A stretch of 64,000 nucleotides of DNA from contig NIVC01001604.1 in assembly GCA_002269645.1 (NCBI GenBank), positions 186,001 through 250,000 of the forward strand. Direction: 5' to 3'. The translations under genes were made by a program, and so were the position numbers. The notes under the pieces are model-generated. The model was not told where the DNA came from, did no database searches, and saw nothing but the letters and a program-made list of their open reading frames with translations. This document shows positions 5,335 through 57,632 of this stretch, one piece after another. How positions within the stretch are numbered: position 1 is the first letter of the stretch; the number at the start of each line of letters is the position of its first letter. This DNA comes from Macrostomum lignano (lineage: Eukaryota).

Positions 5335-7165
5335 TACACTAGGGGTAGGGATTCAGTTGGTCTGGTGTACAGTGGGGTAGGGAGTGTACATTAGGGGTAG
5401 GGATTCAGTTGATCGGGAGTGTACAGTGGGGGTAGGGGTTCAGTTGATCGGGAGTGTACAGTGGGGGTAGGGATTCAGTTGATCGGGAGTGTACAGTGGG
5501 GGTAGGCGTTCAGTTGATCGGGAGTGTACAGTGGGGGTAGGGGTTCAGTTGATCGGGAGTGTACAGTGGGGGTAGGGGTTCAGTTGATCGGGAGTGTACA
5601 GTGGGGTAGGGGTTCAGTTGATCGGGAGTGTACAGTGGGGTAGGGGTTCAGTTGATCGGGAGTGTACAGTGGGGGTAGGGGTTCAGTTGATCGGGAGTGT
5701 ACAGTGGGGGTAGGCGTTCAGTTGATCGGGAGTGTACAGTGGGGTAGGCGTTCAGTTGATCGGGAGTGTACAGTGGGGGTAGGCGTTCAGTTGATCGGGA
5801 GTGTACAGTGGGGGTAGGGGTTCAGTTGATCGGGAGTGTACAGTGGGGGTAGGGGTTCAGTTGATCGGGAGTGTACAGTGGGGGTAGGCGTTCAGTTGAT
5901 CGGGAGTGTACAGTGGGGGTAGGCGTTCAGTTGATCGGGAGTGTACAGTGGGGGTAGGGTTTCAGTTGATCGGGAGTGTACAGTGGGGGTAGGGGTTCAG
6001 TTGATCGGGAGTGTACAGTGGGGGTAGGGGTTCAGTTGATCGGGAGTGTACAGTGGGGGTAGGCGTTCAGTTGATCGGGAGTGTACAGTGGGGTAGGGGT
6101 TCAGTTGATCGGGAGTGTACAGTGGGGGTAGGGGTTCAGTTGATCGGGAGTGTACAGTGGGGGTAGGGGTTCAGTTGATCGGGAGTGTACAGTGGGGGTA
6201 GGGGTTCAGTTGATCGGGAGTGTACAGTGGGGGTAGGGGTTCAGTTGATCGGGAGTGTACAGTGGGGGTAGGCGTTCAGTTGATCGGGAGTGTACAGTGG
6301 GGGTAGGCGTTCAGTTGATCGGGAGTGTACAGTGGGGGTAGGGGTTCAGTTGATCGGGAGTGTACAGTGGGGTAGGGGTTCAGTTGATCGGGAGTGTACA
6401 GTGGGGGTAGGGATTCAGTTGATCGGGAGTGTACAGTGGGGGTAGGCGTTCAGTTGATCGGGAGTGTACAGTGGGGGTAGGGGTTCAGTTGATCGGGAGT
6501 GTACAGTGGGGGTAGGGGTTCAGTTGATCGGGAGTGTACAGTGGGGTAGGGGTTCAGTTGATCGGGAGTGTACAGTGGGGTAGGGGTTCAGTTGATCGGG
6601 AGTGTACAGTGGGGGTAGGGGTTCAGTTGATCGGGAGTGTACAGTGGGGGTAGGCGTTCAGTTGATCGGGAGTGTACAGTGGGGGTAGGGGTTCAGTTGA
6701 TCGGGAGTGTACAGTGGGGGTAGGGGTTCAGTTGATCGGGAGTGTACAGTGGGGTAGGGGTTCAGTTGATCGGGAGTGTACAGTGGGGTAGGGGTTCAGT
6801 TGATCGGGAGTGTACAGTGGGGGTAGGGGTTCAGTTGATCGGGAGTGTACAGTGGGGGTAGGCGTTCAGTTGATCGGGAGTGTACAGTGGGGGTAGGGTT
6901 TCAGTTGATCGGGAGTGTACAGTGGGGGTAGGGGTTCAGTTGATCGGGAGTGTACAGTGGGGTAGGGGTTCAGTTGATCGGGAGTGTACAGTGGGGGTAG
7001 GCGTTCAGTTGATCGGGAGTGTACAGTGGGGTAGGGGTTCAGTTGATCGGGAGTGTACAGTGGGGGTAGGCGTTCAGTTGATCGGGAGTGTACAGTGGGG
7101 GTAGGGGTTCAGTTGATCGGGAGTGTACAGTGGGGGTAGGGGTTCAGTTGATCGGGAGTGTACAG
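5335..7165. repeat. 35-bp G-rich minisatellite, about 50 units
   Basis: ttcagttgatcgggagtgtacagtgggggtagggg. Confidence 0.95.
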
Positions 7166-7829
7166 TTGATCACTGAGGGCAGCTACATGTTTACAAACGC
7201 AAGAATGCCCTATCTCAGTCACTGAAATCAAGTACTGTTTCTGACAAAGCCACTAAGCTCAAAGTGATTTGGCGGATAACTCTCATCTGTGACAGCAAAT
7301 TAGCAATCGAGCAGCTAAATTGTTTTGCCTGGCTGCAAAAAAAGTCAAGGCAAAAAAGCTCAGAGATCAAAGCACCGACATACTAAGCACTGGTCCGATC
7401 GAAGAAAGTACATATGACAGCAAGTCAGATGGTGTGAATAATGTGATGGCGCGGATTCTGCACAATAAATAATTGAATAAGCTCATCAGGTAAAAGAAAA
7501 AATAGCACTAAGGCAAAACTCCATCCAAACAATATCCGATATACTAAAAATTTTCGTCACTAGGCTGACAAAAATTGGCGCACAAAAGCTCTGCTTACTA
7601 CTTAGTGCACAGTAGAAGTTGGGCATAAAGTTGAAATTTTACAGAAAGTTTTGTACAAAAATATGCTTCGAATCAGCCAGCTTGCGTGCTCTTGGGCCAA
7701 TGTGCTTTAGCGGCCATCATCTTCGGCCTGCGATTGTCGAACTCCGTTGGCCGCTAATAGAGCGTTTCTCGTGGAATTTTGTTGTAGCTCTGCTGATAAG
7801 GATAACCGAATCCCGGCCAAAAACAAAGA

Positions 7830-8205: not shown

Positions 8206-27720
<19,515 letters not shown>

Positions 27721-41845: not shown

Positions 41846-42351
41846 GCCCAAAACAGGAAGAGCGCTAAAGATGCCATTTCTGACCCAATCCAGTTTTTTC
41901 TGACCCTCCCTGACCCAATCCAGTTCTTGCTGACCCTTCCTGACCCAATCCATTTCTTGCTGACCCTTCCTGACCCAATACGGTTTTTTCTAACCCTCCC
42001 TGACCCAATCCAGTTCTTGCTGACCCTTCCTGACCCAATCCAGTTCTTGCTGACCCTTCCTGACCCAATACAGTTCTTGCTGACCCTTCCTGATCCAGTG
42101 ACCCATTCTGCCAGCCCCGACCTTTCCAGATCAAATGGAGCAAATCCCGCCATGAGTCAATCAGCCACAATCCTGACCCACTCCGATCCGCCACCGACCC
42201 ACCGACAGCTCGATGAGCGTGCACCCGGCAGCCTCGGCCAGACGGCGCACCAACAGCCTGGCTGGCAGTTCAACTGGCGGAGCTTCGACAGTGACGGCAG
42301 CGGCTGTGGCAAAGTTGGGTGCGACCACGGCAGAAGAACACCACTGTAAGA
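41846..42351 (+). pseudogene. Inverted partial duplicate of the nAChR gene (end of exon 5, intron 5 minisatellite, deleted exon 6)
   Basis: 42100-42350 matches the reverse complement of about 47941-48290. 41846-41877 matches the exon 5 end at 26 of 32 nt. The pseudo-exon 42209-42345 is 137 nt versus 219 nt and is out of phase. Confidence 0.9.
41880..42095. repeat. 30-bp minisatellite, family N (part of the inverted duplicate)
   Basis: tgacccaatccagttcttgctgacccttcc. Confidence 0.93.
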
Positions 42352-42929
42352 AAGACCAAATCTCTACAGTGCTTTTAGGCGTTGTGAAATTTAGGTGGTG
42401 TGAAATCTGCTGCATTGCTTGAGAGCCGTAACTCTCTTTAAAGGGGAAATTTACCCAAAGCATGAGCCAATGCCGCTAAAGCATCTACGAGCTCGCAGTT
42501 CTGTAGAAGACCATCGCAATCATCGCAAAAGGCACAAAAAGTGCAAATAATACTTCGCAACCGTCTGCACCATCGTATAAGCAGTGACAAGCGAGTGGCA
42601 TTTTCGGCTCGAGTTTGACAGGCACGAATGCATAGCCATGCTGTCACTTGTCAAGAACAGAGATGTAGTAAGACTTGTCAAGAGTGATATTCCAGGACTG
42701 ACAAGTCGTGAGACTATTAGCGGCTGCTTGGGATAACCGAACTCAAAGTCAACCTAATCAGTCAAGTATAGTTAGTCACCAGCTGCGGAAGGCTGCCCGC
42801 CCGAGAAGGCAACAAACTACTGAGGATCCAAATTTGACAGCACCAAATCGGGCAAGTGTTCGTTTCCCACGGCAGAAACAAATTACCGAGGCGTCTTCTG
42901 GAGCTCGCGAGACCTGTCTAAATTTTCTC

Positions 42930-42936
42930 TATATAA
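42930..42936 (+). promoter_or_regulatory. TATA-like box
   Basis: TATATAA about 60 nt upstream of the ATG at 42995; TSS not verified. Confidence 0.45.
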
Positions 42937-42994
42937 TTGGTGAGATTTACAAACAAAATTTCAGCCTCGAGCCTGCCTCGATAGACACTGCACG

Positions 42995-44512
42995 ATGAAG
43001 CTCGTCATTCTGCTCTCCCTTGCTGCCTTTGCGGCCGCTGGTAAGTCAATCAGCTCCAAATCGATTTGCATTACGTCGAGATATGTCTGTTACGTATTTT
43101 GAACACAACCAAGAACTTACAAAATGCATTCATTCACTACCAACTCTGACCTCGCAGAGAACACCTTCAGCGCCACCAACTACTACGGCTACGACTTCCA
43201 GCCGAAGCACCATGAAGTGTACCGCAACCCCGAGCCGTTCACCCGCGGACTGGGCCCGAAGCTGAAGACCTGGGCCGAGCGGTTCCCGAGCATCAAGAAC
43301 CTGATCGAATCGAAGAGCACCGCCCTGCCGGTCGAGCTGCAGAGGGTCACCAACAACGGCTACACCCACTACAGCCAGTCCGCCTCCATGCAGGCCATCG
43401 AGGGCGTGGACGCCGACAGCTTCGACGCCTTCGCCGCCTACCTGACCGACACCCTGGAGATCAAGAACGACAAGCGCGACGGCTTCCTGGCCAGCATGGA
43501 GATCATCAAGTTCGCTGATAACACCGACTGGAGCCTCATCGATATCATCTTCGATCAGGACAGCGGCTCCAACTGCAAGTACGTCTGCGTTCTGGGCCAC
43601 CGCGACTTGGTCCACAACACCTACGACTTCATGATTGCCGACTTCAAGAGCTCCTTCCAGCTGGCTCCGGACATCGTGCTGATCGAGGAGCGCAAGAGCT
43701 ACGCCTGGGGTCTGGTGCAGCGCGCCAACATCCGCGTTGAGCGCATTCCCGCCAAGCTGAAGCTGGAGGATGTCGAGCTGCTGAAGACCTTCTTCTGCCA
43801 GGCCGCTCTTGGCCGCTTCGCCAGAATGCTGGACATCGAAGTCCCTGGCATAGAGCAGGCTTACATTGACCCCATGACTGCCATCGGACTGATCAGCGCT
43901 GGTCTCGACATCGTCCCGAAGCTGATCAACATTTTCAAGACTACCAGCACCAGCACCATCATCAAGGAGGTCGCTGGCGAGGGCTTCTCCCGCTACGAGC
44001 AGACCGCCAAGACCTCTGTGACGATCGGCATCAACATGGACAATCTCCTGGGTACCTACCTCAGGGTTCTACCCAGGCTCATCAACCTCAACGCGGACGT
44101 GTTCCAGAACGTCGAGGACGCCATCATCATCGGCTCCATGGCAGAGTCCCAGACCTGGAACGACTTCGACATCGCCTTCAACGCTGACCGGTCCTCCACC
44201 AGCAAGGTCCAGTTCGTCGACGTCGTTTGCGCCAACCGTGGCGACGGCAAGTACAACGTCATCGTGGTGAACGTCGCCCAGGCCTTCATTCTGGCTCCCA
44301 ATGTGCAGTACATTCAGAACTCCAAGTCCTACGTCGGCGGAATTTACTCCAAGACCACCATTGAGCGCAAGGAGTACCCGAGGGACCTCACCGAGAAGGA
44401 CATGGAGGTGCTGATGGCATTCTTCCACATCACTGTGTTCAAGAGGCTGGCCATGCAATACGGCCTTGCTGTCCCACAGCTGCCCGACAAGCCGCCGCTC
44501 AAGCAGGATTGA
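42995..44512 (+). CDS. Secreted protein of unknown function with two tandem homologous domains (exons 42995-43040 and 43158-44512, about 466 aa)
   Basis: Signal peptide MKLVILLSLAAFAAA, a phase-1 G|GTAAGT...CGCAG|AG intron, an uninterrupted 1.35-kb exon with very strong C/G third-position bias, and a clear internal duplication. Confidence 0.88.
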
Positions 44513-45485
44513 GCAAATAATTTTGCTCCAGAGAACTAAGTTGGCTATCTTAGATCCTACCACTCGGTTTTCGAGCATCCAAATATAATATGTTCGATTC
44601 GCGATTGAAGAGATGATCTAAAAATCTGCCTTCTGTTCATTTATTTAAGTACTAACTAACCTATAGATAGAATCAATGCCATGAAAGGTGAAAGCGGAAA
44701 GAAAAATCACTTGAAGAAGACTCAACCAAAGTCAAGAGCAGCGCTATGAGCCCACCTGTGTACGAGTAAGTATGCAAGTGGTAGTTCAAGCCTTAACTCT
44801 ACATTACGCAGATACATTGAGTGCAGTTTGAGAAGAACTGAGGAACTTAACCGACATTGTCACACAACCGACATTGCTGCCCATTTTGCCGAATCCCCTG
44901 AGCAGGCACACAATGCACACATATACGTACAAGCGCGCGGATACGTTCGCAGTCATACGCGCAGTCACACACCACACAGGAGTGTACAGCGGCCCTAACT
45001 TTGTTTGTCGTCAGACATGTACACTTCACTGTGCCTTGGGGTTTGGCCCTCAAGTTCACTATTTGCACGAGCAGACCCAAGCCAAGATTCCAGTTTAGCC
45101 CCAATTGAATGTGACTGCACTTGGAATCGAGCCTGGGCCGCTGGGACATCAGAGCGCCGAACTGGACAACTGGGCTACGGCCCCCCTTCGAGAGATCCTT
45201 GTTGGTGGAACAGGGATTTATGGGACTTGCTGGTGTTAAAAACAACAAAACTCGCGTATAGTTGAGTAAATTTTTATTTTATAAACTGGGTTTTGAATCC
45301 TAGGAATTGTCAGAGAAAGAGCCAGTTTAGGATTCGAGAACATTGTATTTCGGGTATTGAGATGATTGATAACGAAAAAACTATAGCAGTTTTTATCACA
45401 CCATGAATTTTGTTCCTTGGAATCTTTAAGAATTCGATTTCTGCCGATGCCAGTACAGTCTGCTGCATTTTGAAATTCCACTGTT

Positions 45486-45831
45486 CAGGGGCGTCGCTAC
45501 CTGGGGGATAGGGGGGGACATGCCAATGCTTTGCCCCCCTCAAACCCCACCTTGTGACCCGTTGTGGAAATCAAGAATTTTGCATCAGGGCGCTAAAGTA
45601 TGCCAAAATGAGTGCCTGCGGCGCCAAAAATGAGTGCCTGCGGCGCCAAAATGAGTGTCTGTGGCGCTAAGATGAGTGCCTGCGGCGCCAAAAATGAGTT
45701 CCTGTGTGCGCCGCCAAAATGAGCGCTAACAACACCGATTCTCTAAATAATGTACATGTAGGAATTTAGTCATGTACATGTAGAATTCTTGGCTTTGTTC
45801 CCCCACCATAAAATTCATGGCGACGGCCCAG
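45486..45831. mobile_element. hAT-type MITE (346 bp)
   Basis: The left end CAGGGGCGTCGCTA and right end TGGCGACGGCCCAG form a degenerate TIR (11/14). The 8-bp flanks CCACTGTT and CTACTGTT match at 7/8. Internal AAAATGAGTGCCTGCGGCGCC repeats. Confidence 0.7.
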
Positions 45832-45926
45832 CTACTGTTAGTACTATCATCAGCAAAAAATTCACACGTTGCACAATTGAAAGTTTGTTCAAATTATGTA
45901 CTTTGTACTTTAGTGTAGTAGCGCTG

Positions 45927-48900
45927 TCAGACTTTGCTCTTGGAGCCGCTGCAGTTCCGCTGGATGGTTACTATGCGGTCCTGCGTGTTGTACCTGGTCA
46001 GCTGGTCCGTGTAGTCCGTGAGGCTGGGCGCCTGCATGAAGATGCCCAGTGCGCCTGTTTCGGGTGAGAGTGCGCGCTGTACTTACTACTGCCAGTATCA
46101 TGTCGATAACTCTGTAAGTTTCTAATGTCTGCTGCTGCGCTTTCGATATTTTTAATAGTTGGTTGTTTAAATGGCCTGTTGTAATTTTTACTAATACATT
46201 TACTAATACATTTGAGTGGTCAAAGCTTGTTCAAATCAGTTCTAAAAATTTGCTTGAACCAACTATAAATTGATTTGAGCAATCTACGACCCGTGGAGCT
46301 ACTAGCGGTGATTGCGAACTGGCCTTTACAAGGGAGATATGCACCCTTTACTGGTAGTTGTTTGGTTGGCGTTACCAAGGGGCCGATTGTCCCTTTGATG
46401 GTAGTTGTTTGGTTGGCGTTACCAAGGGGCCGATTGTCCCTTTGATGGTAGTTCTTTGGTTGGCGTTACCAAGGGGCCGATTGTCCCTTTGATGGTAGTT
46501 GTTTGGTTGGCGTTACCAAGGGGCCGATTGTCCCTTTGATGGTAGTTGTTTGGTTGGCGTTACCAAGGGGCCGATTGTCCCTTTGATGGTAGTTCTTTGG
46601 TTGGCGTTACCAAGGGGCCGATTGTCCCTTTGATGGTAGTTGTTTGGTTGGCGTTACCAAGGGGCCGATTCTTCCTTTGCTGATAATTCTTTGGCGGTTA
46701 GTTCAAATCCCCCAAAGTTCCTAAATGAGTCGCAGAAACTCTGTGTGTTTCTGTCACTTGCCAATAACAGCGGCGCTGCTGAAGAGCCACATGAACAGCC
46801 GGTCCAGCACCACGGCCACGTACTTCCATTCGTCCCGAATCTGCAAGCGGCAAATCGGCTTTGGTCTCACATTTCGGGGGGAGGCAAAGTGTATTTTAGT
46901 TTCTGTTTGAAAATCAGCAGGTTTGCTCAGCCGATCCGGGGCTGCAGGCCAACATTGGCAAATGAGCTGGAGGTGCCGGGAACGGGGTTGAACTCTGCCC
47001 TGAGCGGCTGCTCAAGAAGGGAAGCCAGATCAGATCAGATTGGCATGCAAGATAGCCGAGATAGTGAAGCACTCCCAGGAAGACGCAGAATGAAGTTGGC
47101 CTGCGCCCTCCAGCTTCGGTTTTGACTAAGAGTAAGTGTTTAAGTGCCCTCATGGCCAGATGTGCAAACGACATCTCAGCCGCAGCTATTGCGCGGCACA
47201 TCTGAAGGCTGCGTACGGCTGTTCAGTCCAAGGACTGGGGGGACCGCAACACACCCTCAATTACCCCAGCTAATGCTGGTAACCCATTTTACAGCTGGGT
47301 GAACTGAAGCAATGCAGAGTCAACTGTCTTCTTCAAGGACACAAATTGCTTCCAGTGGGTCGAGAATCGAACCCCAAACCTTCAGTCGTGAGTCCGACTC
47401 TCTAACCACTGGGCTGCAGCCCCTAGACTGCAACTAGGGAACAACCTGATCGATAATTCAGCTCCTTAACATAAAATGTGACAAGAAACTCAAAGAATTG
47501 GTGAGATAGTTGAAGAGCCCAAGGTCCGTGCCTTCGCCACCACCAGCACAAGTAAAGCAACTTTGGCTTAACTTGGCTTAACAGCGGGTTGCTGCCAGAG
47601 CGAGACGAAATTGCGTGATTGCGCTCAGGCAAAATGCTCATGGGCGCTTGTGCCGGGGCATATGAGAGTTTAACAACAGTTGAATAAGCTGCTTGCATAA
47701 AAATGCTGCGATAGGGTAGCAGCTCTGAGCTGCGAGTGATGCCACCTTGACCCAATCCAGTTCTTTTTGACCCTTTCTGACCCAATCCAGTTCTTTTTGA
47801 CCCTTTCTGACCCAGTCCAGTTCTTTTTGACCCTTTCTGACCCAGTCCAGTTCTTTTTGACCCTTTCTGACCCAATCCAGTTCTTTTTTACCCTTTGCCA
47901 TCCTGACCCCTGAGACTGCATAGTGGGTCAGCGGTCCAGAACTTACAGTGGTGTTCCGCTCAAGAAACTTCAAGTGGCTGGCGATGTTCCTGACACCAGT
48001 CAGCGCCATCTCGACGTCGCAAGCGATGCCGTGGTCGCAGCCAACCTCGCCGCAGCCGCCGCCGTCGCCGTAGCGACACTCGTCGAAGCTCCGCCAGTTG
48101 AACTGCCAGCCAGGCTGCTGCTGGTGCGCCGTCTGGCCGAGGCTGCCGGGTGCGCGCTCATCGAGCTGTTGGTGGGTCGGTGGCGGGTCGGAGTGGGTCA
48201 GGATTGTGGCTCATTGACTCATGGCGGGATTTGCTCAATTCGATCTGGAAAGGTCTGGGCTGGCAGAATGGGTCACTGGATCAGGAAGGGTCAGCAAGAA
48301 CTGGATTGGGTCAGGAAGGGTCAGCAAGAACTGGATTGGGTCAGGAAGGGTCAGCAAGAACTGGATTAGGTCAGGAAGGGTCAGCAAGAACTGGATTGGG
48401 TCAGGAAGGGTCAGCAAGAACTGGATTGGGTCAGGAAGGGTCAGCAAGAACTGGATTGGGTCAGGGAGGGTCAGAAAAAATTGGATTGGGTCAGGAAGGG
48501 TCGGCAAGAACTGGATTGGGTCAGGAAGGGTCAGCAAGAACTGGATTGGGTCAGGAAGGGTCGGCAAGAACTGGATTGGGTCAGGAAGGGTCAGCAAGAA
48601 CTGGATTGGGTCAGGAAGGGTCGGCAAGAACTGGATTGGGTCAGGAAGGGTCAGCAAGAACTGGATTGGGTCAGGAAGGGTCAGCAAGAACTGGATTGGG
48701 TCAGGGAGGGTCAGAAAAAATTGGATTGGGTCAGGAAGGGTCGGCAAGAACTGGATTGGGTCAGGAAGGGTCAGCAAGAACTGGATTGGGTCAGGAAGGG
48801 TCGGCAAGAACTGGATTGGGTCAGGAAGGGTCAGCAAGAACTGGATTGGGTCAGGAAGGGTCAGAAAGAACTGGATTGGGTCAGGAAGGGTCGGCAAGAA

Positions 48901-51900
48901 CTGGATTGGGTCAGGGAGGGTCAGCAAGAACTGGATTGGGTCAGGAAGGTTCAGCAAGAACTGGATTGGGTCAGGAAGGGTCAGCAAGAACTGGATTGGG
49001 TCAGGAAGGGTCGGCAAGAACTGGATTGGGTCAGGAAGGGTCAGCAAGAACTGGATTGGGTCAGGAAGGGTCAGAAAGAACTGGATTGGGTCAGGAAGGG
49101 TCGGCAAGAACTGGATTGGGTCAGGAAGGGTCAGCAAGAACTGGATTGGGTCAGGAAGGGTCAGCAAGAATTGGATTGGGTCAGGAATGACCAACCTTGG
49201 CATCTTCAGTGCCCTCCCTGTTGTCGGGCTTCTTCATGAACAGCAGTTTCGGCAAGGTGTGCAGGAACACCTGGCGAACCCAGGGTGCCATGATGTGCGT
49301 GTCCGGGGACCGCCAGTGCACATTGAGCACAATGACCGTGGCCATGACGGACAGCGTGACCAGGATCATAGTGAACAGCAGGTACTTGAGTATGAGCGGC
49401 ACCACCAGAGAGGTCGGTGGGCAGATGTCGAAGATGAGCAGGAAGAACACGGTGAGTGACAGCAGAATGTTGATTGACAGGGACATCTTCTCGCCAGAGT
49501 CGCCGGGCAGGTAGAAGACGAGGATGGTGAGGAAGCTGATGGCCAGGCAAGGGCAGATGAGGTTCACGCCGTAGAAGAGTGTCTTGCGGCGGATCTTCAG
49601 CGAGAACAGCAGGTCCAGGTAGGGCTCCGGGCAGCAGCGGTAGATCTGGATGTTCCGCTTGGCCGTCACCTCTGGGCGCGGGACGGTGGTCACGTGACGC
49701 TTAGAGGACAGCGAATTACAAACCGAATTTGACCTCCGTGAGAGCCGCTGTCCCCTTCCCGGGTGCTGCAGTGAGAGCCGCTGTCCCCTTCCCGGGTGCT
49801 GCAGTGAGAGCCGCTGTCCCCTTCCCGGGTGCTGCAGTGAGAGCCGCTGTCCCCTTCCCGGGGGCTGCAGTGAGAGCCGCTGTGCCCTTCCCGGGTGCTG
49901 CAGTGAGAGCCGCTGTCCCCTTCCCGGGTGCTGCAGTGAGAGCCGCTGTCCCCTTCCCGGGTGCTGCAGTGAGAGCCGCTGTCCCCTTCCCGGGGGCTGC
50001 AGTGAGAGCCGCTGTGCCCTTCCCGGGGGCTGCAGTGAGAGCCGCTACTAACTAATACACAGTTAGCAGTGATTTTCAGTCCAGCACTGCTCCCTCTCCA
50101 ATAGTCCTGGATCGAAATCTCCCGCGCCCAAAGATTTCGGGATTTGAGCTGTGGCAGGGAGCGCAGGAGCAGCCCTGCTCACAGCACACCCTCAAAGAGA
50201 GCTCAAAGCTCAGAGCTGCGGAGTGAGCTGGGCGGGTGAGGGTCGCAGTTATGATTAAGTCCCTGTCCGATTGATTGAGCCCAGGCCCTATGCTTATTGT
50301 TATTATTTGCATACTGAAGGGCCGGCCCGCTCGATCGGCCACTCAAGTTTCCCCTCGGCCGACCGACACGGAATCGGCGCTCCACTGAGCTGCCCGGGGC
50401 CGGCACCGGGGATCAGAGAAAATCTCCCACACGCCCACCCCCAGCCCCCAGAAAGTTTCCAGCGCAAATCCTCCCGGCGGGGAAATCCGCTGCCCCGCCC
50501 CGCCGCTCTCACCTTGGCCAGATGAGGGACGCCGCCCGGGACAGGGGGGGGAGGGGAATGGGAAAACGGGCACTCTCCGAGGCGAATCAATGTGATTAGC
50601 GTCCGCACGGAACTCCAGATCGAATTCCAAGGCCCAGCTAATTCCCCCCCCCCCGGAGAGAGAGAGCTGTTTGCAGCGGGCCACCCCCAGACACGAAGGA
50701 CCCGGCGAGGCGCCCCAGCAAGGAGGAGGCGAGATGGGCGAGGCTGCGACCCGGCTTGCCCGCCGGGGACGGCCGGGCGGCAGCAATTCAATTTGCTGGA
50801 AATCCCCAGCAGTTTTGCCTCCTCCATGCGCCTCTGTTTCAAACGCTAAATAATAGAGAGAGAGGGGAGGTCCGGGGGGTCCCGCCCGGAGGTCTTCTGC
50901 CCCCCCCAGGCCGAGATCGCGGAAATGCAATTTTCCGTCTGCGCAGCTCGAATTTATTCATCTGCCTCGGTGGTCAGGCGGGCGGGCAGCGGGTCAGGGG
51001 CAGATGGGGGTTCAGCCGGCAGGATTCGATTCACTGGCTGAGCCAATTTGGCAACTGTCTGTTTGGGTTAAGCGGGCGGGCCTCAGCTGACCGGCCTGGC
51101 TGATCTACGAGCAGGGGGGGGGCGTTCGCGCAGGCTGTCAGGCGGTCCTGTCTTGGCGAACTCCAGCGAGGAGGGCGGGGAACTCTGCCAGGGTTTGGTT
51201 TAGAAAATAGAAGGACAGGCGGGAACTTGCAAGCCAAGCTGAATGAAGTTCGTGCTTCTCTGTGCAGCTCTCTCCAAATGAGGCGAATCTGTGGGAAACC
51301 AGCTTCCATCTACCAGCTCCATCTACCAGCTTCCATCTACCAGCTTCCATCTACCAGCTTCCATCTACCAGCTTCCATCTACCAGCTCCATCTACCAGCT
51401 TCCATCTACCAGCTCCATCTACCAGCTTCCATCTACCAGCTTCCATCTACCAGCTTCCATCTACCAGCTTCCATCTACCAGCTTCCATCTACCAGCTTCC
51501 ATCTACCAGCTCCATCTACCAGCTTCCATCTACCAGCTCCATCTACCAGCTTCCATCTACCAGCTTCCATCTACCAGCTTCCATCTACCAGCTTCCATCT
51601 AACGGCTTCTATCTAACAGCTTCAAAATCCAGTTTTCATCTGATTCAACAGCTCCCAGCTTCCGGCTGAGCAGCCTCATCAAGCCAGCTCACCAAGGATG
51701 TCCCACTCCACGTTGTCCACAAACTGGCTGAGGTCCACCGCGTAGTCGATGAACGCCTCGCAGTTGTCGAAGTTTTTCATGCCGGTCCGGTCGGCCTCGG
51801 CCTTCTGGGCCACGTGCCGGAGGTCGATGAGGTAGCCGTTGTGGGTCCACGTGCCCAGCTTCAGGGTGCAGATCTGCGTGTCGAATGGGAAAAACTCCAC

Positions 51901-54900
51901 GTTGATCTCGCACTGGCTCTTGAAGATGATCGGCGGCCGCCACAGCACGGTGCCGTCGCTCAGGACGTTCACCTTGTTCGCCGAGCTGCCGAGGTCCCAG
52001 TCGCCACCGGCGCTAAGGGAGTTGTGAGCACATGAGTATTTGATAAATGAGTAACTAAGCAACTGAGTATTGGTAGTTGAGCAACTGAGTATTGGTAGTT
52101 GAGCAACTGAGTATTGGTAGTTGAGCAACTGAATATTGGTAGTTGAGCAACTGAGTATTGGTAGTTGAGCAACTGAGTATTGGTAGTTGAGCAACTGGTA
52201 GTTGAGCAACTGAGTATTGCTAGTTGAGCAACTGAGTATTGGCAGTTGAGCAACTGGTAGTTGAGCAACTGAGTATTGGTAGTTGAGCAACTGAGTATTG
52301 GCAGTTGAGCAACTGAGTATTGGTAGTTGAGCAACTGAGTATTGGTAGTTGAGCAACTGGTAGTTGAGCAACTGAGTATTGGTAGTTGAGCAACTGAGTA
52401 TTGGCAGTTGAGCAACTGGTAGTTGAGCAACTGAGTATTGGCAGTTGAGCAACTGGCAGTTGAGCAACTGGTAGTTGAGCAACTGAGTATTGGTAGTTGA
52501 GCAACTGGTAGTTGAGCAACTGAGTATTGGCAGTTGAGCAACTGAGTATTGGTAGTTGAGCAACTGGTAGTTGAGCAACTGAATATTGGTAGATGAGCAA
52601 CTGAATATTGGTAGTTGAGCAACTGGTAGTTGAGCAACTGAATATTGGTAGTTGAGCAACTGAGTATTGGTAGTTGAGCAACTGAATATTGGTAGTTGAG
52701 CAACTGAATATTGGTAGTTGAGCAACTGAATATTGGTAGTTGAGCAACTGGTAGTTGAGCAACTGAATATTGGTAGTTGAGCAACTGGTAGTTGAGCAAC
52801 TGAATATTGGTAGTTGAGCAACTGAATATTGGCAGTTGAGCAACTGAGTATTGGTAGTTGAGCAACTGGTAGTTGAGCAACTGAATATTGGTAGTTGAGC
52901 AACTGAGTATTGGTAGTTGAGCAACTGGTAGTTGAGCAACTGAATATTGGTAGATGAGCAACTGAATATTGGTAGTTGAGCAACTGAATATTGGTAGTTG
53001 AGCAACTGAATATTGGCAGTTGAGCAACTGAGTATTGGTAGTTGAGCAACTGGTAGTTGAGCAACTGAATATTGGTAGTTGAGCAACTGAGTATTGGTAG
53101 TTGAGCAACTGAGTATTGGCAGTTGAGCAACTGGTAGTTGAGCAACTGGTAGTTGAGCAACTGGTAGTTGAGCAACTGGTAGTTGAGCAACTGAATATTG
53201 GTAGTTGAGCAACTGAGTATTGGTAGTTGAGCAACTGAGTATTGGCAGTTGAGCAACTGGTAGTTGAGCAACTGAGTATTGGTAGTTGAGCAACTGGTAG
53301 TTGAGCAACTGAGTATTGGCAGTTGAGCAACTGAGTATTGGCAGTTGAGCAACTGAGTATTGGTAGTTGAGCAACTGGTAGTTGAGCAACTGGTAGTTGA
53401 GCAACTGGTAGTTGAGCAACTGAATATTGGTAGTTGAGCAACTGAGTATTGGTAGTTGAGCAACTGAGTATTGGCAGTTGAGCAACTGGTAGTTGAGCAA
53501 CTGGTAGTTGAGCAACTGAGTATTGGTAGTTGAGCAACTGGTAGTTGAGCAACTGAGTATTGGCAGTTGAGCAACTGAGTATTGGCAGTTGAGCAACTGA
53601 GTATTGGTAGTTGAGCAACTGGTAGTTGAGCAACTGGTAGTTGAGCAACTGAATATTGGTAGATGAGCAACTGAATATTGGTAGTTGAGCAACTGAGTAT
53701 TGGTAGTTGAGCAACTGAATATTGGTAGTTGAGCAACTGAGTATTGGTAGTTGAGCAACTGAGTATTGGTAGTTGAGCAACTGAGTATTGGTAGTTGAGT
53801 AACTGAGTATTGGTAGTTGAGCAACTTAGTATTGGCAGTTGAGCAACTGGCAGTTGAGCAACTGGTAGTTGAGCAACTGAGTATTGGCAGTTGAGCAACT
53901 GAGTATTGGTAGTTGAGCAACTGGTAGTTGAGCAACTGAGTATTGGCCGCTGAACGGCCGGTTTTAGCAGCTGAACGCAGCCCGGACCCCGTACTTGTTA
54001 TAGAGCACCAGGTCCGGCGTCCAAATTTCGTCCGACGGCACGTGCAGCTCGTGGATGCTGCCGTAGTGGCTCGGGTCCCACTGGAAGTTCGGGTCGAACC
54101 ACTGCTGGAACACCCACATGTTCAGCGTCACTATCTGGTTCTTTTCGTCCTGGAATTTGAAAAATGCCAAGATATGAAGTTGCTGAGGCCGGAGAGCATT
54201 TCGTTCGGGAGCTCACCACGTCAAGGATCTGGGTGAGGCTGAGGTTCATGTACAGCAGCACCGGCTGCGAGTGGTTGGTCACGGGGCGCACATAGGACCT
54301 GTAGTTCGTGCGGTTCATCAGGTCCGTGAACAGCTTCTTGGCGGCCTCGATGGCAAGCGCTCCTGCGGGTTCAGCGGCGGGTTCGGGGGTCGCTCGAGTC
54401 CGGAGCCTCGTGACTTGGGGGGCCTCGAGCTCCACTGACAGCATTGTTCACCTTGTTTGGAGCAAAAATGACCTAGGCCATCTACACCTATGGCCAGAGT
54501 CCCCTATAACTCTTGATGGCCTCTCCTAAGACCCTTGGTTCCACGGCTCGTAGACACCCTGGAAGGACTGGCTGCCCGCCTTTCCTCCAGGCCACAATCT
54601 CTCCATGGAAACCCTGGCTGCTCCGCACCACAATCCCATAGAAATTCTGGCTGCCCTTCACCACAATTCTATGAAAACCCTGGCTGCCCCACACCACAAT
54701 CCCATTGAAACCCTGGCTGCTCCGTACCACAATCGCATGGAAATTCTGGCTGCCCCGTACCACAATCCCATGGAAACCCTGGCTGCCCCGTACCACAATC
54801 CCATGGAAACCCTGGCTGCCCCGCACCACAATCCCATGGAAACCCTGGCTGCTCCGTACCACAATCCCATGGAAACCCTGGCTGCTCCGTACCACAATCC

Positions 54901-55605: not shown

Positions 55606-56314
55606 TTCTCTCAAAGCGGGACTATTTTTAAAAAATGACAGCTCAAACTTTTAAACCTCAGTCGATTCCTTCAAACGAGCCTCTCTATAGCTACTGCAGA
55701 AATCTCCCCGCCCAGGGGAGAAAATGTTCCCCTGATTAGAGGGCAGAGGCGGATCGCAGCGGGCAGGCCAGGCTGCCCCAATGGCCGCGGGAGATCGAGC
55801 GGGAAGCCGCAGCCACCCCCTGCTCAAGTGGGCGATTGCTGCGTGGCTGCCCCCCGTCCGAACTTCAATCGGAAGCAGCGGCGCGACTCGGGAAGGGACT
55901 CGAGTCCGTGCACGAGTGGCCAAAGACCTCCCCCAAGAAGCTGAGCAGAGCTTTGAGCTGGCAGCCCTGTCCCCTCTCGCCTTCTCAAGCGCAATTAAGA
56001 TCTCCGACGCGTGACGATTGGCAGCCAGCAGCCACCGGCTTGAGGGCAATATTTGCACCGGCGCTAAACACTGTTAATTACCTGAGGCAGGTGCGAGTGC
56101 CGGCTCATGAGGAACTGCCGCTTCTGACTCTATTGGAATGAAAATGTTTCATATTGCCTCTAGTCATGGCCTTACTATCGGGATATCCTCATTGGTCAGT
56201 CATACTGCACTGGGATAGCAATAACATTTATCCTCATTGGGCATTCGATCATGTAGGGATAATTCTGACGGAGTGAACTGTGAGGAATTGGCAATTAATC
56301 ACCAAATAGGATCA

Positions 56315-57632
56315 ATGAGGATAGATGACCATTATTATCTCCATAGGAGTTATCAGTGAGGATAGATGACCATTATTATCCCCATAGGAGTTATCAATGT
56401 GGATAGATGACCATTATTATCCCAATAGGAGTTATCAGTGTGGATAGATGACCATATTATCCCAATAGGAGTTATCAGTGTGGATAGATAACCATTATTA
56501 TCCCAATAGGAGTTATCAGTGTGGATAGATAACCATTATTATCCCAATAGGAGTTATCAGTGTGGATAGATGACCATTATTATCCCAATAGGAGTTATCA
56601 GTGAGGATAGATGACCATTATTATCCCAATAGGAGTTATCAATGTGGATAGATGACCATTATTATCCCAATAGGAGTTATCAATGTGGATAGATGACCAT
56701 TATTATCCCAATAGGAGTTATCAATGTGGATAGATGACCATTATTATCCCAATAGGAATTATCAATGAGGATAGATGACCATTATTATCCCAATAGGAAT
56801 TATCAATGAGGATAGATGACCATTATTATCCCAATAGGAGTTATCAGTGTGGATAGATGACCATTATTATCCCAATAGGAATTATCAATGAGGATAGATG
56901 ACCATTATTATCCCAATAGGAATTATCAATGAGGATAGATGACCATTATTATCCCAATAGGAGTTATCAATGTGGATAGATGACCATTATTATCCCAATA
57001 GGAGTTATCAATGTGGATAGATGACCATTATTATCCCTATAGGAGTTATCAATGTGGATAGATGACCATTATTATACCAATAGGAATTATCAATGAGGAT
57101 AGATGACCATTATTATCCCAATAGGAATTATCAATGAGGATAGATGACCATTATTATCCCAATAGGAATTATCAATGAGGATAGATGACCATTATTATCC
57201 CAATAGGAATTATCAATGTGGATAGATGACCATTATTATTCCAATAGGAATTATCAATGAGGATAGATGACCATTATTATCCCAATAGGAGTTATCAATG
57301 AGGATAGATGACCATTATTATTCCAATAGGAGTTATCAATGTGGATAGATGACCATTATTATCCCAATAGGAATTATCAATGTGGATAGATGACCATTAT
57401 TATCCCTATAGGAGTTATCAATGTGGATAGATGACCATTATTATCCCAATAGGAATTATCAATGAGGATAGATGACCATTATTATCCCAATAGGAGTTAT
57501 CAATGAGGATAGATGACCATTATTATCCCAATAGGAGTTATCAATGAGGATAGATGACCATTATTATCCCAATAGGAATTATCAATGAGGATAGATGACC
57601 ATTATTATCCCAATAGGAATTATCAATGAGGA
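56315..57632. repeat. 41-bp minisatellite
   Basis: aggatagatgaccattattatcccaataggaattatcaatg. Confidence 0.95.

Follow-up and report, generated by a model that had tools for sequence, protein, structure and literature searches.

A secreted protein of Macrostomum lignano with two copies of a seemingly undescribed eukaryotic domain

We analyzed a two-exon gene on the plus strand of a 64,000-nucleotide (nt) stretch of the genome of the flatworm Macrostomum lignano (contig NIVC01001604.1, positions 186,001 to 250,000; referred to below as the window), in which it runs from position 42995 to position 44512. In the reading that we favour, its 466-amino-acid (aa) product is a constrained, secreted protein composed of two ancient copies of an alpha/beta domain of ~205 aa that serves as a binding module, and to this reading as a whole we give a probability of about 0.4. 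The domain appears to be a member of no described family or solved structure. Its relatives make up a large and seemingly undescribed family which, judged by sequence, is not specific to Macrostomum and involves several distant eukaryotic lineages. An earlier note on this DNA had singled out the gene as coding for an unrecognised secreted protein built from two tandem copies of one domain; that observation was confirmed, and the interpretation attached to it proved right in part.

Tandem domain copies and their relatives

The two halves of the protein aligned with each other by BLASTP at 26% identity over 193 aa (E=9e-18). In a MAFFT alignment of four halves, those of the query and of its orthologue P0002, the repeat units occupied residues 46–254 and 255–466, and the domain-profile envelopes at these same residues spanned the whole profile. 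Hence the tandem copies reported in the earlier note represent a true duplication, but the unit is ~205–210 aa long and not ~190 aa. Thirty-seven columns were invariant across the four halves. These included the six ordered motifs that had been listed in the earlier note, all of which fell in aligned columns. The ordered motifs that define the family, GF..F, W...D..F, F.LAP[DN], [KR]S..GG and P..[LT]..D....FF, occur in both halves of the query. On the plus strand, domain copy 1 corresponds to positions 43247–43873 and domain copy 2 to positions 43874–44509, as delimited by hmmsearch envelopes, the alignment, AlphaFold2 (AF2) secondary structure and the ratios of nonsynonymous to synonymous substitution rates (dN/dS) given below.

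A full-length, word-indexed homologue search returned 2 matches, namely the M. lignano cluster itself and P0002. A profile derived from the four half-proteins was then run exhaustively with HMMER against 1.84 billion representatives and uncovered a large family (NEVERTHELESS) with 450 cluster representatives at E≤1e-3, 263 at E≤1e-10 and 26 at E≤1e-30, all counted as representatives at 50% identity. A profile of an internal repeat can thus reveal a family that a full-length search misses (450 versus 2 matches). Word-indexed searches with a 58-sequence family alignment and with the nearest outgroup, P0007, yielded 15 unnamed proteins and P0007 alone, respectively.

Domain architecture was tallied over 149 listed representatives. 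One full domain was found in 124 of them and two or more in 19, and the last domain ended at most 25 aa from the C-terminus in 137; in the query, domain 2 extends to the last residue. A Met start was present in 137 of the 149, and a hydropathy heuristic indicated a strongly hydrophobic N-terminus in 94 of these 137. Two of the 149 had a C-terminal transmembrane-like segment. Approximately 15 carried an additional N-terminal domain of ~200 aa, including P0006, P0007, P0011, P0012, P0015, P0017, P0021, P0047 and the M. lignano proteins Mlig000053/Mlig031413. This extra domain, which in P0017 lies between the two copies, had a conserved Cys-x-x-Cys-Trp/Phe...Cys-Cys-like motif and no Pfam match.

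In a neighbour-joining tree of 166 domain copies, domain 1 of the query grouped with the first domains of P0002, P0007 and P0008 and then with those of other two-domain proteins, while domain 2 grouped with the second domains of P0002, P0007, P0008 and P0035. Since first and second domains group separately across proteins, the duplication is ancestral to both paralogue groups of M. lignano (see below). Going by this tree, the tandem arrangement was not created in the present gene and is common to protist-like two-domain proteins.

Source labels were legible for ~35 clusters. Among these, organism-named NCBI and UniRef entries came from M. lignano alone, which was also the sole animal. One cluster was a EukProt entry from Ancoracysta twista, P0047 is held at NCBI under the name 'hypothetical protein', and the other labelled clusters came from ENA, JGI, Logan and Tara environmental and SRA assemblies. 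The 369-aa family member P0058 was located on a single-gene contig of ~1.3 kb that recurred in at least 10 sequencing runs (L004–L013, SRR336775xx), and its longer copies (L004–L007) were capped by CCCCAAA repeats 5' and by GGGGTTT repeats 3'. Because of these telomere repeats at both ends, we consider the contig to be a ciliate macronuclear nanochromosome; the repeat itself is presumably that of Chilodonella-type ciliates, although our literature search on C4A3 ciliate telomeres found nothing relevant. Some relatives were present on gene-dense, AT-rich contigs (GC 0.26) beside eIF3a, RING, kinase and PUF genes, one relative lay on a contig beside a Ras gene that is interrupted by a short intron, and others were on GC-rich contigs (GC 0.66). 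P0007 is a transcript bearing a polyadenylation signal. The GC content of the relatives spans 0.25 to 0.66, which points to several distant eukaryotic lineages. With 450 representatives, and with a ciliate, Ancoracysta twista and many other microbial eukaryotes among the carriers, the proposal in the earlier note that the protein is lineage-specific has to be abandoned.

A scan of 185,579 prokaryotic species genomes and of IMG/VR returned no relative, a weak negative given that two short motifs were scanned. The names Paramecium and Tetrahymena did not occur among the ~35 labelled clusters, and no comparison aimed at the TMP/Grl matrix proteins of ciliate trichocysts and mucocysts was made. 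At the 5' ends of GC-rich homologue transcripts, the only trace of a dinoflagellate spliced leader was the 7-nt GCTCAAG at positions 5–11 of L024, the transcript of P0015. These are the last 7 nt of the leader and hint at dinoflagellate genes among the marine members, but the match is too short to serve as evidence.

Gene structure, selective constraint and genomic context

Exon 1 (42995–43040) starts with the ATG at 42995, encodes the signal peptide MKLVILLSLAAFAAA, contributes the first base of codon 16 and is conserved in P0002. The signal peptide, called by eye and from hydropathy, shows an n-region, an h-region and an AxA site and is followed by Glu (MKLVILLSLAAFAAA|E), in good agreement with the secretion proposed in the earlier note. 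The single intron described there was also recovered (43041–43157; 117 nt, GTAAGT...CAG, GT-AG, phase 1, GC 0.39). Its position coincides exactly with the boundary of the signal peptide. L001 and L002, two orthologous contigs that resemble transcripts, have no counterpart of it, by which the splice junction and the reading frame are confirmed, and the homeologous locus L003 is interrupted at this site by an intron of 123 nt. Exon 2 (43158–44512, with the TGA stop codon at 44510–44512) encodes the mature protein of residues 16–466, which has a mass of ~50.9 kDa, an isoelectric point (pI) of 5.3 and four cysteines. No N-x-S/T sequon for N-glycosylation was found in the 466-aa protein, nor any conserved cysteine pair. 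The mature protein begins with a linker (residues 16–45, positions 43158–43246) that overlaps a stretch with a predicted local distance difference test (pLDDT) score <50 (residues 1–39). Upstream of the start codon, the 5' untranslated region (UTR) covers at least 42962–42994, which translates as the first 11 residues of PAA65952.1/P0001 (QPRACLDRHCT-M). A TATA box (TATATAA, 42930–42936) lies ~32 nt 5' of the first base of this public transcript-derived model, in a region that is 97% identical in L003. The GC content at third codon positions (GC3) of the coding sequence was 0.876, compared to a GC content of 0.39 in the intron and 0.44–0.51 in the flanking kilobases, which bears out the extreme C/G codon bias remarked on earlier.

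P0002 is, like the query, 466 aa long. It is 82% identical and was found on two independent 1.5-kb contigs (JGI sample 3300036508 and run SRR11829105). Both contigs are intron-less, start 1–9 nt before the ATG and share a common 3' end ~30 nt after AATAAA. They are thus shaped like mRNAs, which suggests that the gene is transcribed in a wild relative. Run numbers adjoining SRR11829105 belong to Spartina salt-marsh meta-omic data (PMC11464771).

Selective constraint was estimated as dN/dS by the Nei-Gojobori method. Against P0002 the ratio was 0.198 overall (dS 0.50), with values of 0.15 for domain 1, 0.20 for domain 2 and 0.74 for the linker, where constraint is relaxed; against the g3 homeologue described below it was 0.12. 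The low ratios indicate that both domains are under purifying selection, which speaks against a pseudogene as well as against an effector in reproduction or immunity that evolves fast. The ratio of 0.20 weakens the seminal or defence role proposed in the earlier note. A seminal-fluid or other reproductive product, for example of the prostate glands, would be in keeping with a secreted protein that cannot be assigned to a family, and a published study describes many novel secreted proteins without recognisable homologues that are expressed in the M. lignano prostate glands (PMC5977470). We nevertheless consider this role very improbable, as strong purifying selection is unlike typical seminal fluid proteins, the gene identifier is absent from the main text of the searchable literature, and the family has a long history and a broad distribution among unicellular eukaryotes, so that a reproductive role in the worm would need secondary co-option.

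The gene is already annotated, but merely as hypothetical: exon 2 and the protein are a 100% match to M. lignano PAA65952.1, 'hypothetical protein BOX15_Mlig009159g1, partial'. The assembly contains three homeologous copies of the locus family Mlig009159, with g2 and g3 in the same cluster as g1. The window is collinear with the g3 locus (L003, scaffold NIVC01000291.1), to which it is 93.6% identical over 41882–45520. Further blocks of synteny continue to about 56.2 kb, giving >14 kb in total shared with a second M. lignano scaffold, which we take to be the outcome expected of the partly duplicated M. lignano genome. No further copy of the gene was found within the window. A fourth member of the cluster, UniRef A0A1I8F1J1 (887 aa), is an older fused model, the extra C-terminus of which stems from reading on through the 3' UTR in a shifted frame, with four intergenic pieces (45852–49624) appended; the pieces concerned lie within 44478–49624 of the window. 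It is named 'Lipase_3 domain-containing protein', but the 887-aa protein had no Pfam match at E≤0.1, and neither Lipase_3 nor the GxSxG nucleophile elbow of an alpha/beta-hydrolase was found. The entry is probably a mis-annotation, and this public name of the locus is wrong and should be disregarded.

A second paralogue group in M. lignano, Mlig000053/Mlig031413 (PAA93599.1 and PAA93605.1; 622 and 451 aa), has the same two domains in the same d1–d2 order behind a signal peptide, as do the environmental proteins P0006 and P0007. Paralogues of the Mlig000053 type matched the domain profile at E=7e-68 and the query at 31% identity over 432 aa. The group differs from the query in the extra N-terminal ~200-aa domain with its Cys-containing motif and in having an intron-less gene (Mlig000053 at L025 10001–11869, NIVC01000024.1; GC3 0.85, with a TATAAAA box upstream). 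All of its members are uncharacterised.

Almost all relatives are protist or environmental sequences, as would be the case for a protist contaminant, and an assembly artefact or a dead pseudogene would likewise not be a true worm gene. These explanations are effectively refuted by the spliceosomal intron and the TATA promoter, by the location of the gene within minisatellite DNA of the M. lignano type that shares synteny with another M. lignano scaffold over >14 kb, by the three homeologous copies in the assembly, by the intact reading frame with a dN/dS of 0.12–0.20, and by the 82% identical orthologue in an independent environmental sample.

The window as a whole is dominated by minisatellite arrays, for which Tandem Repeats Finder listed 64 rows with periods of 14–130 nt and up to 100 copies (for example 5380–7166, 15591–17073, 48277–49187, 52058–53946 and 56311–57632). 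Most long open reading frames (ORFs) near the gene, such as 48221–49459 and 51679–53898, fall inside such arrays and are reading-frame artefacts. The earlier note was correct in describing a compact, repeat-free gene unlike its neighbours, except that the neighbours are mostly minisatellite arrays and not repeat-containing genes. One 30-nt minisatellite unit (TGACCCAATCCAGTTCTT..GACCCTT.C) was present on both flanks of the gene, at 41880–42097, 47748–47896 and 48277–49187. In direct orientation the unit has one occurrence upstream and one downstream, after which a 30-copy array follows in inverted orientation, an arrangement common to the homeologous L003. Further away, at 10091–14134 on the plus strand, we found a long terminal repeat (LTR) retrotransposon of the Ty3/gypsy type. 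Its 1001-aa ORF (11129–14134) contains RVT_1, RNase H, Integrase_H2C2 and rve domains, and the 342-aa ORF (10091–11119) that precedes it had no Pfam match and is presumably gag.

Predicted structure and comparison with known families

Given the query and its orthologue as input, AF2 reached a pLDDT of 29, and a 48-row family alignment was used instead. The resulting model had a mean pLDDT of 77.4 and a predicted template modelling score (pTM) of 0.56, with residues 1–39 disordered, and was read as the order of secondary-structure elements (DSSP) together with pLDDT. Each domain is modelled as a helical hairpin (residues 41–69 and 254–277), short helices, strand 1 (91–100 and 299–308), two helices, five antiparallel strands (140–211 and 348–421) and a 22-residue C-terminal helix (218–239 and 428–449). 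The latter is long and amphipathic and bears a conserved FF pair. The alpha/beta character that the earlier note had ascribed to the domain is supported by this model.

Columns conserved in at least 55% of the 166 domain copies were almost all Gly, Pro, Phe, Trp, Leu or Ala. The conserved sites comprise the GF of the short helices, the Trp that opens strand 2, F-x-L-A-P-[DN] at the turn between strands 4 and 5, S-x-x-G-G at the turn between strands 5 and 6, the Pro before the last helix and the FF within it. Ser196/406 (83%), Asp187/Asn397 (69%) and Asp220/430 (64%) were the sole conserved polar residues, and no conserved His, Cys or Glu was found among the 166 copies.

We compared the protein and its family with known families by several routes. 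In Pfam (2025 copy), the sole match of the query at E≤10 was a sub-threshold Polbeta, and scans of 10 long relatives, 58 domain copies and the paralogue revealed no recurrent family. A PDB sequence search with the query gave nothing (best E-value 2), the 58-sequence family profile had no match below E=1 among PDB sequences, and Foldseek with the whole two-domain AF2 model found no PDB structure at E≤1e-3 (best E 0.15, TM-scores 0.1–0.3). These negative searches are in line with the view of the earlier note that the protein cannot be assigned to a known family. No match to a characterised metazoan family was found and evidence of transcription is present, two points on which that note had staked its claim.

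Two known systems resemble the query in layout. The BPI/LBP/CETP (TULIP) proteins are secreted proteins of ~450–480 aa with a signal peptide and two tandem alpha/beta domains of ~200 aa that have very low mutual identity, and in each domain one short and one long helix accompany an antiparallel sheet of five strands. The query shares this size and general layout, and the likeness is architectural alone. Neither PF01273 nor PF02886 matched the query at E≤10 or was found among 58 family members, there was no PDB sequence or profile match, and the Foldseek top 50 for the whole model contained no BPI, CETP, LBP, Takeout or SMP structure. In comparison with these proteins, each query domain is enlarged by a strand-helix-helix unit and by a helical hairpin at its N-terminus. 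The helix-grip fold of Bet v 1/START (SRPBCC) has the order beta-alpha-alpha-beta6-alpha in SCOP. With its beta-alpha-alpha-beta5-alpha core and long amphipathic final helix, the query is compatible with that order as far as a comparison by secondary structure alone can tell, although it lacks one strand and has additional N-terminal helices that amount to ~50 residues. The Foldseek top 50 contained no SRPBCC structure, and no Pfam family of the clan recurred among the 58 members.

The best structural matches were ~200-aa proteins of giant viruses, found with Foldseek in BFVD. Hyperionvirus A0A3G5A862 matched with a probability of 0.99 (E=5e-3), and weaker matches were Borely moumouvirus A0A6G6ADX5 (0.60) and Terrestrivirus A0A3G4ZN21 (0.51), with E-values up to 4e-2 over 156–273 columns. 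These proteins of protist viruses have the size of a single domain and are all uncharacterised; target-normalised TM-scores were 0.24–0.36 and identities 7–15%. The nameless entry A0A650DA38 was also among the BFVD matches with appreciable Foldseek probability. The motif scan of IMG/VR returned no sequence relative. The structural matches might be remote members of the family, which would bear on how the gene passes from one eukaryote to another; we regard this as a lead and not as a relationship.

Possible functions and origin of the family

A non-enzymatic binder is the function that we favour because the domain has no conserved catalytic constellation, presents a sheet clasped by an aromatic-lined helix and has a BPI/LBP-like and helix-grip-like layout. 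Each domain would then be a binding module and the protein would be released as an abundant soluble binder, a mechanism that, taken on its own, we put forward tentatively. The space between the sheet and the long helix with its aromatic lining would plausibly accommodate a lipid or another hydrophobic ligand, and the two ancient, diverged copies may act as a pseudo-dimer.

Several observations weigh against the binder. The binding function is deduced from modelled topology and from the absence of catalytic-looking residues, and the conserved Ser and Asp on the beta4-beta5-beta6 hairpins of the model could instead form a catalytic or metal-binding site. Neither helix-grip (Bet v 1/START) nor BPI/TULIP structures appeared in the Foldseek PDB top 50, so the analogy with lipid carriers is not backed by a fold match. 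The packing of the two domains against each other is uncertain (pTM 0.56). As for abundance, high expression is a prediction from GC3, and the one paralogue checked likewise had a GC3 of 0.85.

Alternatively, the protein could be cargo or matrix of regulated secretory organelles, such as epidermal rhabdites or gland granules in the flatworm and extrusomes or mucocysts in protists, packed at high concentration and released on discharge, with a structural or mucus-forming role. Ciliates, Ancoracysta (with its 'ancoracyst') and Macrostomum (with its rhabdites) all have extrusive secretory organelles, and the identified sources of the family are a ciliate and Ancoracysta twista. A signal peptide, an acidic pI of 5.3, the lack of glycosylation sequons and of a disulphide framework, and the very strong codon bias in both M. 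lignano paralogue groups would suit such cargo, as would an orthologue abundant enough to be assembled from (putative) salt-marsh environmental samples. However, matrix and mucus proteins usually have coiled coils, low-complexity stretches or repeats, all of which are lacking in this compact, globular alpha/beta fold. Moreover, the taxon pattern comes from very few labelled sequences, and a function linked to phagotrophy or predation would fit it equally well. We therefore regard the cargo role as possible but unlikely.

The occurrence of the family in predatory and phagotrophic eukaryotes, where it has expanded into many paralogues, would also be compatible with a membrane-active effector, i.e., a toxin or pore-forming protein that serves to kill or digest prey or in defence, the N-terminal amphipathic helices of which would insert into target membranes. 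The protein is secreted and soluble, and each domain opens with an amphipathic and fairly hydrophobic helical hairpin (for example 254–277, with Kyte-Doolittle values up to 1.6). We consider such an effector improbable: a dN/dS of 0.15–0.20 over both domains carries no arms-race signature, no pore-forming toxin fold (aerolysin/ETX-MTX2, actinoporin, ClyA, MACPF) was matched in Pfam or by Foldseek in the PDB, and the C-terminal membrane anchor of two relatives fits a cell-surface binding protein better.

That the gene has long been resident in the worm lineage, whatever its origin, is shown by its intron, by codon usage like that of the host, by the existence of two paralogue groups and by the orthologue in a congener. 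How it came there can be framed in two ways. The domain may be a new fold and family of predatory or phagotrophic eukaryotes, from which an ancestor of Macrostomum got the two-domain gene, acquired from a protist, perhaps via prey or a giant virus. After the transfer, the gene would have taken up an intron, adapted its codons to those of the host, given rise by duplication to the two paralogue groups and become an abundant secretory product of the worm. This full scenario is rather doubtful in our view. A protist-to-flatworm transfer as such is possible, as is the domesticated horizontal acquisition suggested in the earlier note, and fits the label pattern, in which M. lignano stands as the only animal. 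The notion that giant viruses served as the vector, which draws on the structural matches, is speculative. Alternatively, this may be an old eukaryotic gene that was lost in most animals. Our search for literature on Macrostomum combined with horizontal gene transfer found nothing relevant. The patchy spread, with protists and one flatworm genus and no other named animal among the labelled clusters, pits transfer from another eukaryote to an animal against an ancient origin followed by massive loss. If the transfer were true, it would be a rare case in which a whole secreted-protein family passed from a protist to an animal.

If the family is as unplaced as it seems, it would amount to a sizeable gap in the catalogue of protein families, with hundreds of diverged, uncharacterised secreted members spread over eukaryotic supergroups. 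M. lignano, which is transgenic and amenable to RNA interference, is probably the most tractable organism in which to address the function of the domain, with ciliates that carry nanochromosomes second.

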